Source: Ministeria vibrans ATCC 50519
Taxonomy: Eukaryota > Protista > Filasterea
Assembly (NCBI GenBank): GCA_943704425.1
Contig: CALSCP010000985.1
Span: 1-50,356, forward strand
Reading direction: 5' to 3'
Length of the DNA: 50,356 nucleotides
Numbering within the stretch: the first letter of the stretch is position 1; each line of letters opens with the position of its first letter. The notes beneath the pieces are model-generated. The model was not told the origin of the DNA, made no database searches, and saw nothing but the letters and a program-made list of their open reading frames with translations. A program made the translations under genes and the position numbers. Positions 32,411 through 38,605 of the stretch are shown here, one piece after another.

Positions 32411-33767
32411 TCACTTCTCCTCTTCCTTCTTCGGCTCCGATTCGTCGCCATCGATTACAGAGCATTGGATCTCGCGCAGCAAAGCGGTATCGTCGCACAA
32501 CGACTGGTACAACTCCCAGACAAACTTGCCGGTCGTCTGGTCGATGAGACGGTGAGCGAGCTTGTCAATGGCAATGACACTCAGACACGTTTGGACGTAG
32601 GCGTCAATGAGATCGTCCATGCCAATGCCAAGCGAGTTGAAGTCCTTGCCGTCCATGAGCACGAGGCGCTGCGACTCGGTGGTCCACGAACCGTCTGGTC
32701 GCTTCACCGACAGATTCGTGCCCAGCTGTGCCCATGAGTCTGTCTCGCCACTCAGCTCGTACTTGAGCGGCTCGTGCGCACGTCGCGCGTAAATGGCAAT
32801 CGGTGCAAATCCTTTGCCTCCGCGGTTGCACACCATCATACGCAGGTCCGCAACAAAGATTTTGAGTGCCTTGTTGGGTACGGTACCCACATGGTAGAAC
32901 TTGCCCGTCTGCGTTGTCGAGCTCCATGTCGAGTTGCCCACCAGCGACTGCACAATGAATTTGTCGTACGTGTGCTTGAGCGCAAGGAACCGGTCCAACT
33001 CGGCTTCGCTTGTAATCGTGTACACTCCCTGACCAGCATTCGCATACGGCACTATAAAAAGACAATAATTAAATTTGAATACGTCTTCTCAGTGGACACA
33101 CGCAAAATTAAATATAAAATAATAACACACCTTTGATGACGGCGTGGTAGCCAAAGCTGCGCACCCAAATGGGAACTTCGGAGAGAGAGACGTCTTTGAT
33201 GGTCTCGGGGGTGGCAACGGCAAGCGAAGTGCCACGTGACTTGAGTTCGGCGTTGTAAAAGTCGTACGCTTTGGAGGCGACCAACTTGTTTCGGCCGCCC
33301 GCGAGACACGCCACAATGGGATTGAGAACAAGAGTGTCGGAAGTGAGGGGGAAGCGACTCCACGGCTTCTGCGTAACATAGCGGAAGCAGACGCTAATAG
33401 GACGCCACACACCAGCGGCTGTGCGCACTTCCATGATCGTTTTGCCGTCAATCTTGCGCCAGCGCACATTCGCCTCAGCCTCATCGGTGTCGTGGTAGAA
33501 TTCAACAAGATGGACGCCGTGGCCCACAAGGTCGGCCAGCGTGGCGGCATACCCCGACGCCTCCATCTCGTTCTTGTCGTACACCACTGCCAGGTCGGCG
33601 TCCGGCATCTCCGCCATCGCCGACTTGACCATCGGCAGAAACACCTCGTTGAGCAGCGTCAGGTAGCCCCCTTGCTCGTTCGTGGCGTTTGACAGCGGCA
33701 TGCTCTTCTGGCCGGACGGACAAGAGTTTGTCTCAATGACCTTAAAAAAAAAACATTAATAATTATT

Positions 33768-33802
<35 letters not shown>

Positions 33803-34158
33803 TAAACAACTTACGACCATTTTGCGCATTCCCGTCTCTGTAGTGACATTGAAGAGGTCGCTGCCGGCCCACATGAAGTACTTCGGGACGTAGGCGAGGA
33901 CGGCGCGCAGTTCGTCGCGTGTCACGTCCGGATGGAGATGGCAGTAGCGCAGGACGATGCGCTCGTTGCCCAGGTTGATGAACGACTGTACAATCGGGTG
34001 GATCGTGGAGTTGAGGACGCGCGGGTAGAAATGAGCCGCAGCTGCAGTCACAACAATGTTTATTATTATTAATGGGTTTGTTTGGTGTTGGACCCTTTGC
34101 TGTTCGTACGCTCAAACGAGTCGGGCGCGATGAAGTCTGTTTTGTGTACTTTGGCCAT
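32411..34158 (-). CDS. Circularly permuted ATP-grasp family amide/peptide ligase
   Basis: Four exons. The metal-binding strands GSDLF...VIETNSCPSG (ExN) sit near the N-terminus, before the pre-ATP-grasp part and AVIK|VPYANAGQGVY (K + Gly loop), FIVQSLV and ADLRMMV. This order is what marks the permuted fold. Confidence 0.75.
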
Positions 34159-34651
34159 GGTTAACGTGTCAAATGAGAGACAAGAAAAACAAAAACGGAA
34201 AGTGAGAAGAAGAGAGAAAAAAAAGTGATTGAAAAGATCAATGCAATGAGTGAGTTTCATTTTGGAAGTCGTCCAGAACAGAACGGTTTTTCGATGGTAA
34301 TAGGCCGCGGATCAGTGGAGCCCAATAGAAACACACAATATGGTGTGCACCAACTCACCGAATTGCAATAGGCGTCGGTAGAGGAGAGTTACATTTCGAA
34401 ATGTTAAAGTCATCCGAGAGGCAAAAAAAAAAAAAGAAACCACAAAACGGGATGTCATCCCACACTCAATTCCAACCGCCCCGGACGCGATCTTCAACTG
34501 TGGGGTATGTGGAAGACATCGCAACGTCAGTCGTCGTCAAGCTGCTTGTGCAGAGCCTACACGCCTGGTTTCGCGTCGTGATCAGGATTAGACGGACTGA
34601 ACAGTGAAAATCCAAACTATTTCACTCCTTTTTATTCTTACTCACACCCTC

Positions 34652-36571
34652 ATGTTATTTGCTGAGCAACTGCGCCTTGTGTCGGAAGACCAGTGGCAGC
34701 GCTTCTACCTGCCGTACGGGCAGCTGAAGGCGCTGATGCGGCAGTATTCGGCGGCGAGCGACAGCGAATGTTCCGACCTGAGTCGACGCATGCAGACGCT
34801 CATCGACGACTTCACTGCTGCCCTGGAAGGCATGCACGCCGAGGAGAACAACCTTCTGCAGGCGAAGTTGATAAAGGCGCGAAGCGTAGTGAACACGCAG
34901 TCGGTCAAAAGTTCCAACTGCAGTCAGCTTCTTGCTCTGGCAACGCACGTCGAGCGCCTCAAGTACTTCGTTCAGCTGAATCGGACGGCAATAGACAAGA
35001 GCATTGCGCACGCTGGAAAGTTGGATCTGACGTTGAATGTGGACCAGGCGACGGAGAAACTGTCCGAGCTGGCTCGGTCGCTGGCCGAGCTCGCCCGGCG
35101 GTCCCGGATGCTCATGGCCAAGCTGCCTGTCCGTCCCAATGCACAAGAGGAGCTGAAGCGACAGCGCGAGGAGGCTAACAAGGGGGAGGACGAGCCCGAG
35201 AGCGAGCCTCATGTCGATAGCTTTGACTTTGAAGAATTTCCGACGGGTGTGAGGTGAGTTGAATGATATTATTTTAATTTTTTGTTATTATTATTATTAT
35301 TTTTTTGCCTTCTTGATTCTCATTAATAATTTTATTATTATTTTGTTTTGATTTGTGTCTTGTTTTCGTTTTTGCAGCACCATGATGGTGAACATGGGTA
35401 TTGGATCACTTGGCCAACCTATAGCGGTTCCCGTCATAGTGGTGCGAGGGGCGCGTGCAGGGCCTGTGCTCGGACTGACAGCGTGTGTCCACGGCAACGA
35501 ACTCAATGGCATTCCCCTCATTCACTCCGTGCTCCAAAGTGTCCATGCCGACTCGCTTCTGGGGACGCTGATTGCCGTTCCCGTTGTCAATGTTGAGGGG
35601 TTTGCGGCGGGCACGCGCTCCTACGTGGACGGAACGGATCTCAACCGCACAATGCCTGGCAGAGAGTGCGGCACATCGCCACAACAGTACGCAAATCATC
35701 ATTAAAAAAATCATTATCACTTATACATTGTTTTCTTTTTTAAAGGTTTGCGCATATGTTTGTAACCAAAATTCTCAGGCAGTGTGAGTACTTGATTGAC
35801 TTGCACACGGCGAGCCATCGGCGTGCAAACTCGCTGTATGTGCGGGCGGACTTGGCCGATGCCCGTACACGTCGCATTGCTGTACGATTGCAGCCGCAGA
35901 TTGTTGTACACAGCTCGTCGCCACATGGTAGTGTGCGGGGTGCTGCCGAGGCGATGGGTGTGACTGCGGTGACGCTGGAGATGGGCAATGCGGGTGTGTT
36001 TCAGCCGTGGATGATCGAGCGGGGTCTTGAAGGCACTCTGTCGGTCATGCACGCCCTCAACATGTTGCTGGGTGAGAAGCGCACAACTCCCGTGCTTACA
36101 GCGCACTTGAACATATCGAGGCCCGACAAGGAACCATCGGAGGACGCGACAGTTCTGAAAAAGAAGAAGACCACCGAAGCACCGGTGGTCTGTACTTCGT
36201 CGCGATGGATCTTCTCCTCCCACGGCGGACTCCTCCACGTCTACCCCAAGGTACTAGTTGTGTGTCGTTTACCTTTAGTAGTAGTATTAGTAGTAGTAGT
36301 AGTAGTAGAGTAGTAGCAACGGGACTACTAGTTTGTTGTGGCTCAACCACATCATTACTATTTGTAGGTTGCGAGTTGCGTCAAGGCAGGAGATGTGCTT
36401 GCGCGTGTTGTGGACGTTTTTGGACACGAAGTGGCGCAGTACACGGCGGAGGAGAGTGCAGTTGTTGTGGGCGTGTCGGTCGATCCCGTGTGCCGTTCGG
36501 GCGATCGCATTCTTCACTTGGGCTCCGTGGGCGATGCGTTTCACTCGGATACGCACGATGGTCACGAGTGA
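34652..36571 (+). CDS. SPX domain fused to succinylglutamate desuccinylase/aspartoacylase (AstE/AspA, M14-like) metallo-amidohydrolase
   Basis: Exons 34652-35253, 35378-35686, 35746-36250 and 36368-36571 in frame. SPX: MLFAEQL...QWQRFYLPYGQLKALM and LKYFVQLNRTAIDK. Hydrolase: VHGNELNG (HxxE), DLNRTMPG, IDLHTAS, TLEMG, and C-terminal barrel VKAGDVLARVVDVFG...GDRILHLG. Confidence 0.87.
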
Positions 36572-36681: not shown

Positions 36682-38605
36682 TTATAGGCTGAAAAGCACC
36701 TTTGTGTCGTACTGGGCGTAGGAGTTGCAGCAGGCGGGCGAGTGGGAGGCATCAAGACCCTCTTCAAAGGCGACCCACATAGTCTGGTCGGCGAGGGAGG
36801 GCCGGTAGACAGCCGAGAGGACGTTGCTACCCTTGGAGGCATCGGCACACGAGAGGAACGAGGGTCGAGTTGAGCCACCCTTGTCGCCTACTAATGCCGT
36901 CAGATTGACTGCTTGCAAGGGTCCAATGAGTGTGTGCGAGGCCTCGTAGGTGCGAAAAGTGTCGGCGAGCAGCTGGTAGCGCACTTCACTGTCGCCCGAA
37001 GGAGGATTGCTGTCGATGGATGTTGCCACAAAGTGCGGGTCGTATCCGTGATTCGTGCGCCACACAGCCTCTTCCAGCGGAGCACCCCATTGACTTGCAG
37101 CCTCTCGTGGATCATTGGCGCCAAACTGTGCTGTGTAGCCCCGCATGGTCTCGAGCACGACAAAACGTCGGTCGACACCCGATCCAACACCATGGTTGAT
37201 ACCCAGTGTGTTGTTGGTCGCATTGAAGACGGTCATGGCCTGCTCGAGTGTCGACGAGCGTTCCATGAGCCAGCGCAAACGGAGCGTCCACGGAAACCCA
37301 TCAAAGGTTTCCTGGCGCGTGTCGTCGCCCGCCTCGTGCACCGTAATCCCTTCGGCGCTCATGCCCGTCAGCGCGCCCGGCAGACCGCAGAAGCCCACCG
37401 TCAGGTAGGGTGTCAAGTGTGGCAGGTGGTACACCGTCAGCAGTTTGAAGTCGGCAATGCCAGTGTTGGCCATCCAGTCAAGATTGCGCGCCGTGTACAA
37501 TTCGCCATTGACCGTGCGCGAACCCCACGCGCCCCAGTTCGAGCAGTGGCCTTTCTTGCCAACGTCGCCTGCACTCGACGACGACGACGAGAGGGCCGCC
37601 AGCTGTTGCACCGCTCGATACACGTTGTGAGATTCGGCCGCAGTCTGGTTGCCGCCCAATTCGTGCACCAGCAGCCAGTAGATGTTGCTTCCAATGTCGC
37701 CCGGGAAGTTGGACACGGTGAGGCCACGCTTCGAGACAAGTTAGCAAATGGTGCAATTGTAATTGTGGGTTCTTTCGTACATAGAGATTCTTGGCCATTT
37801 CGTGCATGCCCATGTCGTGGAAGACGCTTGAGATTCCGTCCAGCTCTTCTTGCATTTCAAGGGGCACCTAAGACAAACAGAGACAGAGAGAGAAGAGAAA
37901 CATAGACAGACAGAGAGAGAGAGGATAGAGAAGAGGAGAGGAGACAGACAGAGACAGAGAAGGAGACAGACAGAGACGAGAGGAGAGGAGTAGACACAGA
38001 CAGATAGGCAGGTAGACAGAGAACAGATAGGCAGGTAGACAGAGAACAGAGAGACAGAGAGACAGAGAGAGAGAGACAGAGAGACAGAGAGACAAAGAGA
38101 GAGACAGAGAGACAGAGAGAGAGACAGAGAGACAGAGAGAGAGACAGAGAGACAGAGAAACAAGAGCGTATTTAATACTGTGGTGTCTCATTTATGCCCT
38201 CACCTGCTTGCTCAAGTGGTTCTCCCACTGGATATCGAGCCACTTAACGAGGAGCAGCTGCTCGAGTTTGTTGGGCAGAACCTACAGTGGGTGTGTGAGT
38301 ACAAGCGCGTGTGTGTGCTCATGGGCTACTCGTACTTTGTCGATCAGTCGTTTCCACGTCTCCTCCGACTCCTTTGCAACAAGATGCGCATACGCTTCGC
38401 CTGCAGCACGACGGCTCGGTTCGCGCAACACAGCAATGAGGATGGGCTTGGCATAGCCGTCGACGGCGGAAGTGTAGAGCGACGAATTGCTCCATGTCCG
38501 AAGCAACTGCGGCGCTCCCCCAGTCGAAATGCGAGGCGTAAAGGGCGGATCTTGGGCCAAAGATGAGGCCACAAGAAGTGCCATCACGAGCGTGTGCACA
38601 ATCAT
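36682..38605 (-). CDS. Secreted/lysosomal Ntn-hydrolase, peptidase C45 / acid-ceramidase-like (resembles Dictyostelium dcd1-type proteins)
   Basis: Signal peptide MIVHTLVMALLVASSLA; EMQEELDGI; autoprocessing site GH|CSNWGAWGSRTVNGELYTARNLDW; LTGMSAEGITVHE; WRTNH. Confidence 0.82.
37872..38165. repeat. Compound (GAGACA)n/(GA)n purine-rich satellite in a C45 gene intron
   Basis: Seen directly. Confidence 0.88.

Follow-up and report, generated by a model that had tools for sequence, protein, structure and literature searches.

Positions 32,411 to 36,571 of a contig of the filasterean Ministeria vibrans ATCC 50519 (CALSCP010000985.1 of assembly GCA_943704425.1, of which the 50,356 nucleotides analysed, position 1 to the end, are called the window) carry two divergently oriented genes, one for a predicted amide ligase of the permuted ATP-grasp group and the other for a predicted zinc amidohydrolase of the AstE/AspA type. 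We propose, with a probability of roughly 0.62, that these genes correspond, in a eukaryote, to a widespread, uncharacterised prokaryotic module, that they were acquired together and that they are coupled in amide metabolism. The members of the module would be an amide ligase of the permuted ATP-grasp type, a zinc amidohydrolase of the AstE/AspA type and, as a rule, a second ligase resembling either GshB or RimK. In about 90% of the prokaryotic loci that we read, the counterparts of the two genes lie next to or near each other. It is therefore very probable that the pair is what remains of an operon or is coupled in function, rather than neighbouring by chance, and that its two enzymes work in one pathway.

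The linkage on which this proposal rests was established in two sets of genomes. In a scan of GTDB (one genome per species, with a profile built from 8 alignment rows), at least 541 species carry a relative of the ligase, and an AstE/AspA gene lies in the flanks of 67 of the best 80 loci, which were the ones read. When only loci with at least 2.5 kb of downstream sequence are counted, AstE/AspA is found near the ligase in 51 of 57 GTDB loci and in 48 of 53 loci of an independent metagenome scan, giving 99 of 110 for both together; the preliminary description of this DNA had asked whether bacterial homologues of the two genes are genomic neighbours, and they are. The linked loci come from Planctomycetota, Bacteroidota, Myxococcota, one metagenome-assembled genome (MAG) of Pseudomonadota and one archaeon. 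A metagenome scan made with exon 3 of the hydrolase returned no relatives.

Clustering of the open reading frames (ORFs) of 160 loci left just three widely shared genes, namely the ligase (158 loci), AstE (118) and a second ATP-grasp ligase (113). Their arrangement differs between lineages: the order is ligase, GshB-like ligase, AstE in Saprospiraceae/Lewinellaceae and ligase, AstE, RimK in Planctomycetota, and in three bacterial assemblies (L008-L010) the ligase overlaps AstE/AspA by 8 bp, with RimK following. In two Myxococcota loci the ligase is followed by its two partners, which are encoded on the other strand, and in Tenacibaculum, the Pseudomonadota MAG and a MAG named 'delta proteobacterium' the ligase and AstE stand alone. 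The GshB-like second ligase scores 142 bits, short of the equivalog cut-off at 272. As for the window's own genome, a search with one query recovered no GshB-like ligase from it, and the only RimK match is one of 22.6 bits inside a 724-residue frame on another contig. In the archaeon the ligase and AstE are adjacent and convergent; in that genome (G001, L006:12618-14577) they are followed by a 434-residue protein with no Pfam match, beside which lie a DUF3335/peptidase-C39-like protein and then a MazE/ParE-type pair. A gene for an MscS channel occurs in 13 loci from several phyla and adjoins the ligase in about half of them (directly in L017, L071, L089, L125, L182 and L187, of which L071 and L089 are without AstE); in L094, also without AstE, it lies about 3.7 kb from the ligase.

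The placement of the window genes agrees with this picture. Compared with the linked prokaryotic genes, the ligase is 53-61% identical, exon 2 of the hydrolase 42-58% and exon 3 33-48%. In the trees, the AstE exons of the window fall inside the clade of linked AstE proteins (support of 96 in the Shimodaira-Hasegawa-like approximate likelihood ratio test, SH-aLRT), apart from the genome's own paralogue, and ligase exons 3 and 4 are each placed beside fungal sequences, which form a polytomy together with the bacterial clade linked to AstE. Both window genes are accordingly found in or beside clades of linked prokaryotic genes, and the bacterial branching order is the same in the AstE and the ligase trees. 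A profile search for AstE orthologues gave only bacterial proteins among the best 120 listed. We infer that the two genes would most likely have been acquired together, and that intron gain and a rearrangement to a divergent pair around one spacer may have followed.

The ligase gene (32411..34158, minus strand) comprises four exons (34158-34110, 34041-33815, 33740-33131 and 33051-32411, stop included) separated by introns of 68, 74 and 79 nt (34109-34042, 33814-33741 and 33130-33052), and its 508 codons, from the ATG at 34158 to the stop at 32411-32413, encode a protein of 508 residues. The hydrolase gene, on the plus strand, runs from the ATG at 34652 to the stop at 36569-36571, likewise in four exons (34652-35253, 35378-35686, 35746-36250 and 36368-36571) with introns of 124, 59 and 117 nt (35254-35377, 35687-35745 and 36251-36367), and encodes 539 residues in 539 codons. 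The two ATGs are separated by a divergent spacer of 493 bp (34159..34651), which presumably holds a shared or bidirectional promoter. All six introns are of the GT-AG type, short and AT-rich within GC-rich exons (about 59% GC), and each splice junction restores the consensus of the respective protein family. Intron 2 of the ligase (33741-33814) contains an unbroken run of about 33 A, and intron 3 of the hydrolase (36251-36367) a GTA/TAG-type microsatellite.

Transcript-like contigs from the public runs X1, X2 and X5 skip the six introns exactly, whereas contigs of X19, a DNA-like assembly holding 0.97 of the sampled words, cross them unspliced; both genes are therefore transcribed and spliced, and the two intron-bearing, head-to-head genes of the preliminary description hold at the coordinates given there. 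Of the words sampled from the stretch, a fraction of 0.70-0.73 is present in runs X1-X4, and the two coding sequences together amount to 0.72 of the stretch. RNA contigs of the ligase extend to 34224, and none was found from 34225 to 34681, so that the hydrolase ATG at 34652 is without transcript support. One X2 contig joins 957 nt of another contig of the genome, C569 (G000:C569:14391-14420), to the window at 34682, which is 30 nt inside the predicted coding sequence of the hydrolase; since there is no AG acceptor at this position, the contig is probably an assembly chimera.

Searches with the window genes were run exon by exon, and the full-length fold of the ligase was predicted on a bacterial homologue, P0010. 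No ligase exon matched a Pfam or NCBIfam model or a PDB sequence. An exhaustive HMMER search with exon 4 as query gathered a family of 348 cluster representatives (at 50% identity), whose full-length members mostly measure 460-500 residues and whose named members are all labelled hypothetical, among them proteins of Podila verticillata, Rhizoclosmatium globosum, Reticulomyxa filosa, Cyanidium caldarium, Rotaria magnacalcarata and a Clostridia MAG. Besides the GTDB species, the family thus spans fungi, a red alga, a foraminifer and a rotifer. In one predicted protein of 1409 residues, P0054, residues 1169-1361 are a ligase homologue and an RFC1-like AAA module is present as well; a gene for RFC1 lies about 12 kb from the window ligase, and P0054 may be a merged gene model of a syntenic relative.

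The ExN motif, which is the final one in classical ATP-grasp enzymes, stands in the window ligase at the start of exon 3, upstream of the glycine-rich loop (the Mg/ATP motif VIETNSCPSGQKSM, 33699..33740, minus strand), and the complete order is IETNSCPSG, GGRNK, VIKVPYANAGQGV with its lysine and glycine-rich loop, VQSL, DLRMMV and GTNLS. The same succession holds family-wide, as IETNSCPSGQKSMP, ACLAGGRNK, VIKxPYSNAGQGV, VQxLIG, DLRMMV and LGTNLS, and every ATP-grasp motif sought, from IETNS to GTNLS, is present. Of the residues conserved in the family, the window protein retains all 16 that are invariant and 26 of the 27 that are nearly so. The permuted motif order claimed in the preliminary description is thereby confirmed. 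Membership in the Pfam families CP_ATPgrasp_1 and CP_ATPgrasp_2 is not supported, as no hidden Markov model (HMM) of these families matched the ligase exons at E-values up to 10, 28 full-length members of the ligase family gave no meaningful Pfam match (E-values up to 0.01), and genome G002, which has a member of the ligase family, gave no match to PF14403. What the two groups have in common is the ExN motif ahead of the glycine-rich loop: an hhalign comparison with two genuine CP_ATPgrasp_2 proteins reached an E-value and a P-value of only 0.039, with all motifs co-linear and the VIETNSCPSGQKSM region aligned to LEDNLRTPSG. The usual partners of CP_ATPgrasp proteins, an alpha-E domain protein and a transglutaminase-like peptidase, were not seen in the ligase loci read here.

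The predicted structure points in the same direction. An AlphaFold model (AF2) of P0010, which is 51% identical to exon 4 of the window ligase, was built with the family alignment and is confident (predicted local distance difference test score, pLDDT, of 93; predicted template modelling score, pTM, of 0.92). Its Foldseek probability is 1.00 to many ATP-grasp ligases, with VIA-align Z scores of 12-18; the top Foldseek matches are 3n6x (in first place), 3k1t, the yeast and human glutathione synthetases, Cp1B, GspS and YgiC/YjfC, and the best VIA-align match is 3k1t (Z 17.7 over 332 co-linear residues). The permuted enzymes align with P0010 from about residue 12 to 430 (12-427 with 2hgs, 11-418 with 7uk6, 27-418 with 3n6x and 43-452 with 3k1t), and the classical enzymes Ddl, LysX and RimK cover it only from about residue 135 (Ddl and LysX to about 445). 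The structural check proposed in the preliminary description thus returned, through P0010, an ATP-grasp fold with permuted relatives at the top. From its motifs and from the fold modelled for its homologue, the window ligase is predicted to be an intact amide ligase of the permuted ATP-grasp group, in a family separate from Pfam CP_ATPgrasp_1 and CP_ATPgrasp_2.

Exons 2-4 of the hydrolase (35378..36571, plus strand) encode the catalytic and C-terminal domains of an AstE/AspA zinc amidohydrolase and align over their full length with bacterial AstE/AspA proteins, interrupted by a single insert of about 28 residues. The Pfam model AstE_AspA_cat (PF24827) scores 59.8 bits on exon 2 and 53.1 bits on exon 3 against a cut-off of 25, and the motifs HGNE, DLNR, DLH and TLE, already recognized as intact in the preliminary description, are all present and aligned with those of the ligase-linked bacterial AstE proteins. 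From what is known of aspartoacylase we take the HxxE residues and the DLH histidine to be the zinc ligands, together with a catalytic glutamate. By its motifs the protein is an AstE/AspA enzyme with an intact catalytic apparatus. None of the NCBIfam equivalog cut-offs for DoeB, AstE or aspartoacylase is reached: the nearest name is the deacetylase DoeB, with 46.7 bits on exon 2 against a cut-off of 402.7, and the linked bacterial AstE proteins score 76-93 bits (93.3 at most for DoeB). The genome holds a second AstE/AspA gene, a single exon of 318 residues at G000:C2275:11317-12273 (L004:1441-2397), which is very divergent from the window hydrolase and has no ligase within the 3.5 kb read. Convergent with the hydrolase lies a single-exon ORF of 344 residues (36682-37716, minus strand) that scores 83.5 bits with the NCBIfam model C45_proenzyme against a cut-off of 85; this C45 N-terminal-nucleophile hydrolase was considered as a third member of the module and rejected, having no counterpart in the 160 prokaryotic loci.

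The question arises as to what these two enzymes may do together. Our best reading is that the ligase would link an amine, which may be a polyamine, to an amino acid or a small peptide, and that the conjugate would be hydrolysed by AstE/AspA. The ligase would activate a carboxylate as an acyl phosphate and then join an amine to it, its substrates being an amino acid or small peptide on one side and an amino acid or polyamine on the other, and the hydrolase would cut the amide bond in the ligase product or in its precursor. The structural relatives of the ligase are small-molecule amide ligases, namely glutathione synthetases, the ATP-grasp-type glutamate-cysteine ligase family, Cp1B, GspS and YgiC/YjfC. 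Cp1B belongs to the biosynthesis of E-64, GspS, YgiC and YjfC are peptide-polyamine ligases, and YgiC and YjfC are cited more precisely as peptide-spermidine ligases (PMC12568646). Loci of the Saprospiraceae type also contain genes of polyamine synthesis, encoding a pyridoxal-phosphate-dependent ornithine/arginine decarboxylase (18 loci), an agmatinase-like member of the arginase family (17), a deoxyhypusine-synthase-like protein (13) and, only sometimes, a CN-hydrolase (10). They may stand between the ligase and the other two genes, divergently upstream or downstream, so that the linkage persists and the placement varies (L037:9593-12881 is one example; L065, L067, L072, L088, L160, L181 and others are similar), and they suggest a conjugate of an amino acid or peptide with an amine.

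That ATP-grasp ligases are paired with peptidases is a familiar theme of comparative genomics, and permuted ATP-grasp families with peptidase neighbours were reportedly described by Iyer et al. in 2009. Among characterized systems, E. coli Gss is bifunctional, its synthetase and amidase working in opposite directions. Like YgiC and YjfC, it shares the permuted ATP-grasp fold with the window ligase and has no family match to it at the sequence level; the further likeness to Gss lies in an amide ligase paired with an amidase that acts on the same conjugate, and in the polyamine context of some of the bacterial loci. The difference is that Gss has a fused CHAP cysteine amidase, whereas the window pair has a hydrolase encoded on its own, an AstE/AspA zinc enzyme with predicted substrates. 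The couple of GshA (PF08886, 3k1t) and GshB is comparable in that 3k1t is the best structural match of the ligase and the GshB-like ligase of the bacterial module recalls the two-step synthesis of glutathione, but the PF08886 model gave no HMM match and the GshB-like gene stays below its equivalog cut-off. In mammals, RIMKLA and RIMKLB synthesize N-acetylaspartylglutamate and aspartoacylase hydrolyses N-acetylaspartate; an ATP-grasp ligase and an AstE/AspA hydrolase thus act there on related small acidic amides, with the differences that the genes are unlinked and that the ligase is of the classical, non-permuted RimK type.

Of the make-and-break pair of the preliminary description, the coupling of ligase and hydrolase is very probable, and opposition between the two enzymes is one of two ways to understand it, since the hydrolysis may be a maturation step. 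Deacylases of arginine or lysine biosynthesis remove an acyl group at the final step, and one or both ligases of the module could in the same manner build an N-acylated or otherwise protected intermediate from which AstE/AspA takes the acyl group last. Such a biosynthetic sequence would account for most bacterial loci being ordered ligase, second ligase, deacylase on one strand, overlapping or tightly spaced, and also for the nearest NCBIfam relative being a deacetylase; DoeB, however, is catabolic and is matched far below its cut-off, and the closest functional analogue among the fold relatives, Gss, sets synthetase against amidase. We regard this sequence as a genuine but clearly less probable alternative. 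Protein tagging, in which the ligase would add amino acids such as glutamate to a C-terminus or side chain and AstE/AspA would take them off, seems to us very unlikely: RimK-type ligases do belong to the module in Planctomycetota, and RimK, LysX/ArgX and TTLL6 are among the structural matches of P0010 (Z 12-14), but the best and longest matches are the small-molecule ligases 3k1t, the glutathione synthetases, GspS, YgiC/YjfC and Cp1B, and clustering of the 160 loci revealed no conserved candidate target protein in the neighbourhood. That the genes arrived or evolved separately and lie side by side without meaning is the least credible explanation, for although the ligase occurs in other eukaryotes with no AstE beside it and head-to-head pairs are common in the window (as the preliminary description remarked), the genome search found one locus for ligase exon 4 and two for AstE in 29.7 Mb, the neighbour is precisely the AstE of the ligase-linked clade, and by a rough estimate the chance of the ligase having the sole linked-type AstE beside it is well under 1 in 1000.

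The first exon of the hydrolase (34652..35253, plus strand) adds an element of its own. It encodes an N-terminal extension of 200 residues, predicted to be all helical, and the hydrolase may have acquired in it a degenerate SPX domain. SPX (PF03105) is the top Pfam match of residues 1-140, with residues 1-33 falling on model positions 1-33; the exon as a whole scores 12.9 bits and its residues 1-140 score 16.1 bits (E-value 0.012), below the cut-off of 27.8. The N-terminal exon of this genome's own SPX protein, only 25 residues long and taken as a control, reaches 29.6 bits. Between these two sequences M1, F3, L7, W15, Y19 and Y22 are identical without a gap, and QLNRTA, in the helix with the lysine cluster, is common to both; KILKKYDK of the genome's own SPX reads KSIAHAGK in exon 1, with three lysine positions replaced, and exon 1 retains Y22 and K26 as well as two lysines in the helix-4 motif. 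Going by what Wild et al. 2016 reportedly found, the positions kept would be the phosphate-binding cluster and those lost the lysine surface cluster. Exon 1 found no homologous proteins, was not recognized by the protein atlas and matched no SPX among PDB sequences; a search for SPX relatives with it returned only the query's own protein, and no comparable extension occurs in the bacterial loci. A single-sequence AF2 model gave six helices at a pLDDT of 57. On balance we incline, without much margin, to a derivation of exon 1 from SPX. That it confers control by phosphate or inositol pyrophosphates, as the preliminary description had assumed for the hydrolase, is rather unlikely; because the SPX score is below threshold and lysine-cluster positions are replaced, such control is unproven, and we treat it as speculation.

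Several observations weigh against the proposal of a jointly acquired and coupled pair. The orientation is divergent in the window and co-directional in most bacteria. The ligase groups weakly with fungal sequences and not within a single bacterial clade, a placement that does not demonstrate a recent joint transfer. No AstE lies within about 10 kb of the ligase in six further eukaryotic loci (in Rotaria, Podila, Rhizoclosmatium, Cyanidium and two metagenomic contigs); the linkage that the preliminary description proposed to check in other organisms is thus present in prokaryotes and is not seen in these six loci. One query for the GshB-like partner found none in the window's genome. The polyamine link is limited to one bacterial family, and no member of the ligase family has a known substrate. 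With respect to exon 1, its SPX score remains below the Pfam cut-off, BLASTP against the genome's own SPX gives an E-value of 1.2 only, and Foldseek with the low-confidence model (pLDDT 57) recovers only generic helical bundles. We still prefer the reading of the two genes as eukaryotic counterparts of the prokaryotic module. In it, splicing and gene structures, the families and the fold class, the preserved catalytic motifs and the linkage in prokaryotes are shown, and co-transfer, a shared substrate, the make-and-break logic and any function of the SPX-like part are inferred. A more ambitious version is improbable as a whole, namely that in more than 500 bacterial species and scattered eukaryotes the ligase would make a peptide-polyamine or acidic dipeptide conjugate, for example an osmolyte or a thiol-like or polyamine store, which AstE/AspA would recycle, and that a captured SPX would here add the sensing of inositol pyrophosphates or phosphate.

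We found nothing in the literature on the combination of this ligase with AstE/AspA. As far as we could find, the ligase family and its tight pairing with one AstE/AspA clade are new, and so are the survival of the pair as spliced, divergent eukaryotic genes and the SPX-like extension. A definite partner and a testable chemistry can now be assigned to a ligase family for which Pfam and NCBIfam have no model, and Ministeria offers a rare case of a prokaryotic gene linkage retained in a eukaryote after intron gain. Should the SPX-like domain work, it would be, to our knowledge, the first SPX fused to an amidohydrolase, and it would link phosphate status to the turnover of nitrogen or of polyamine conjugates.

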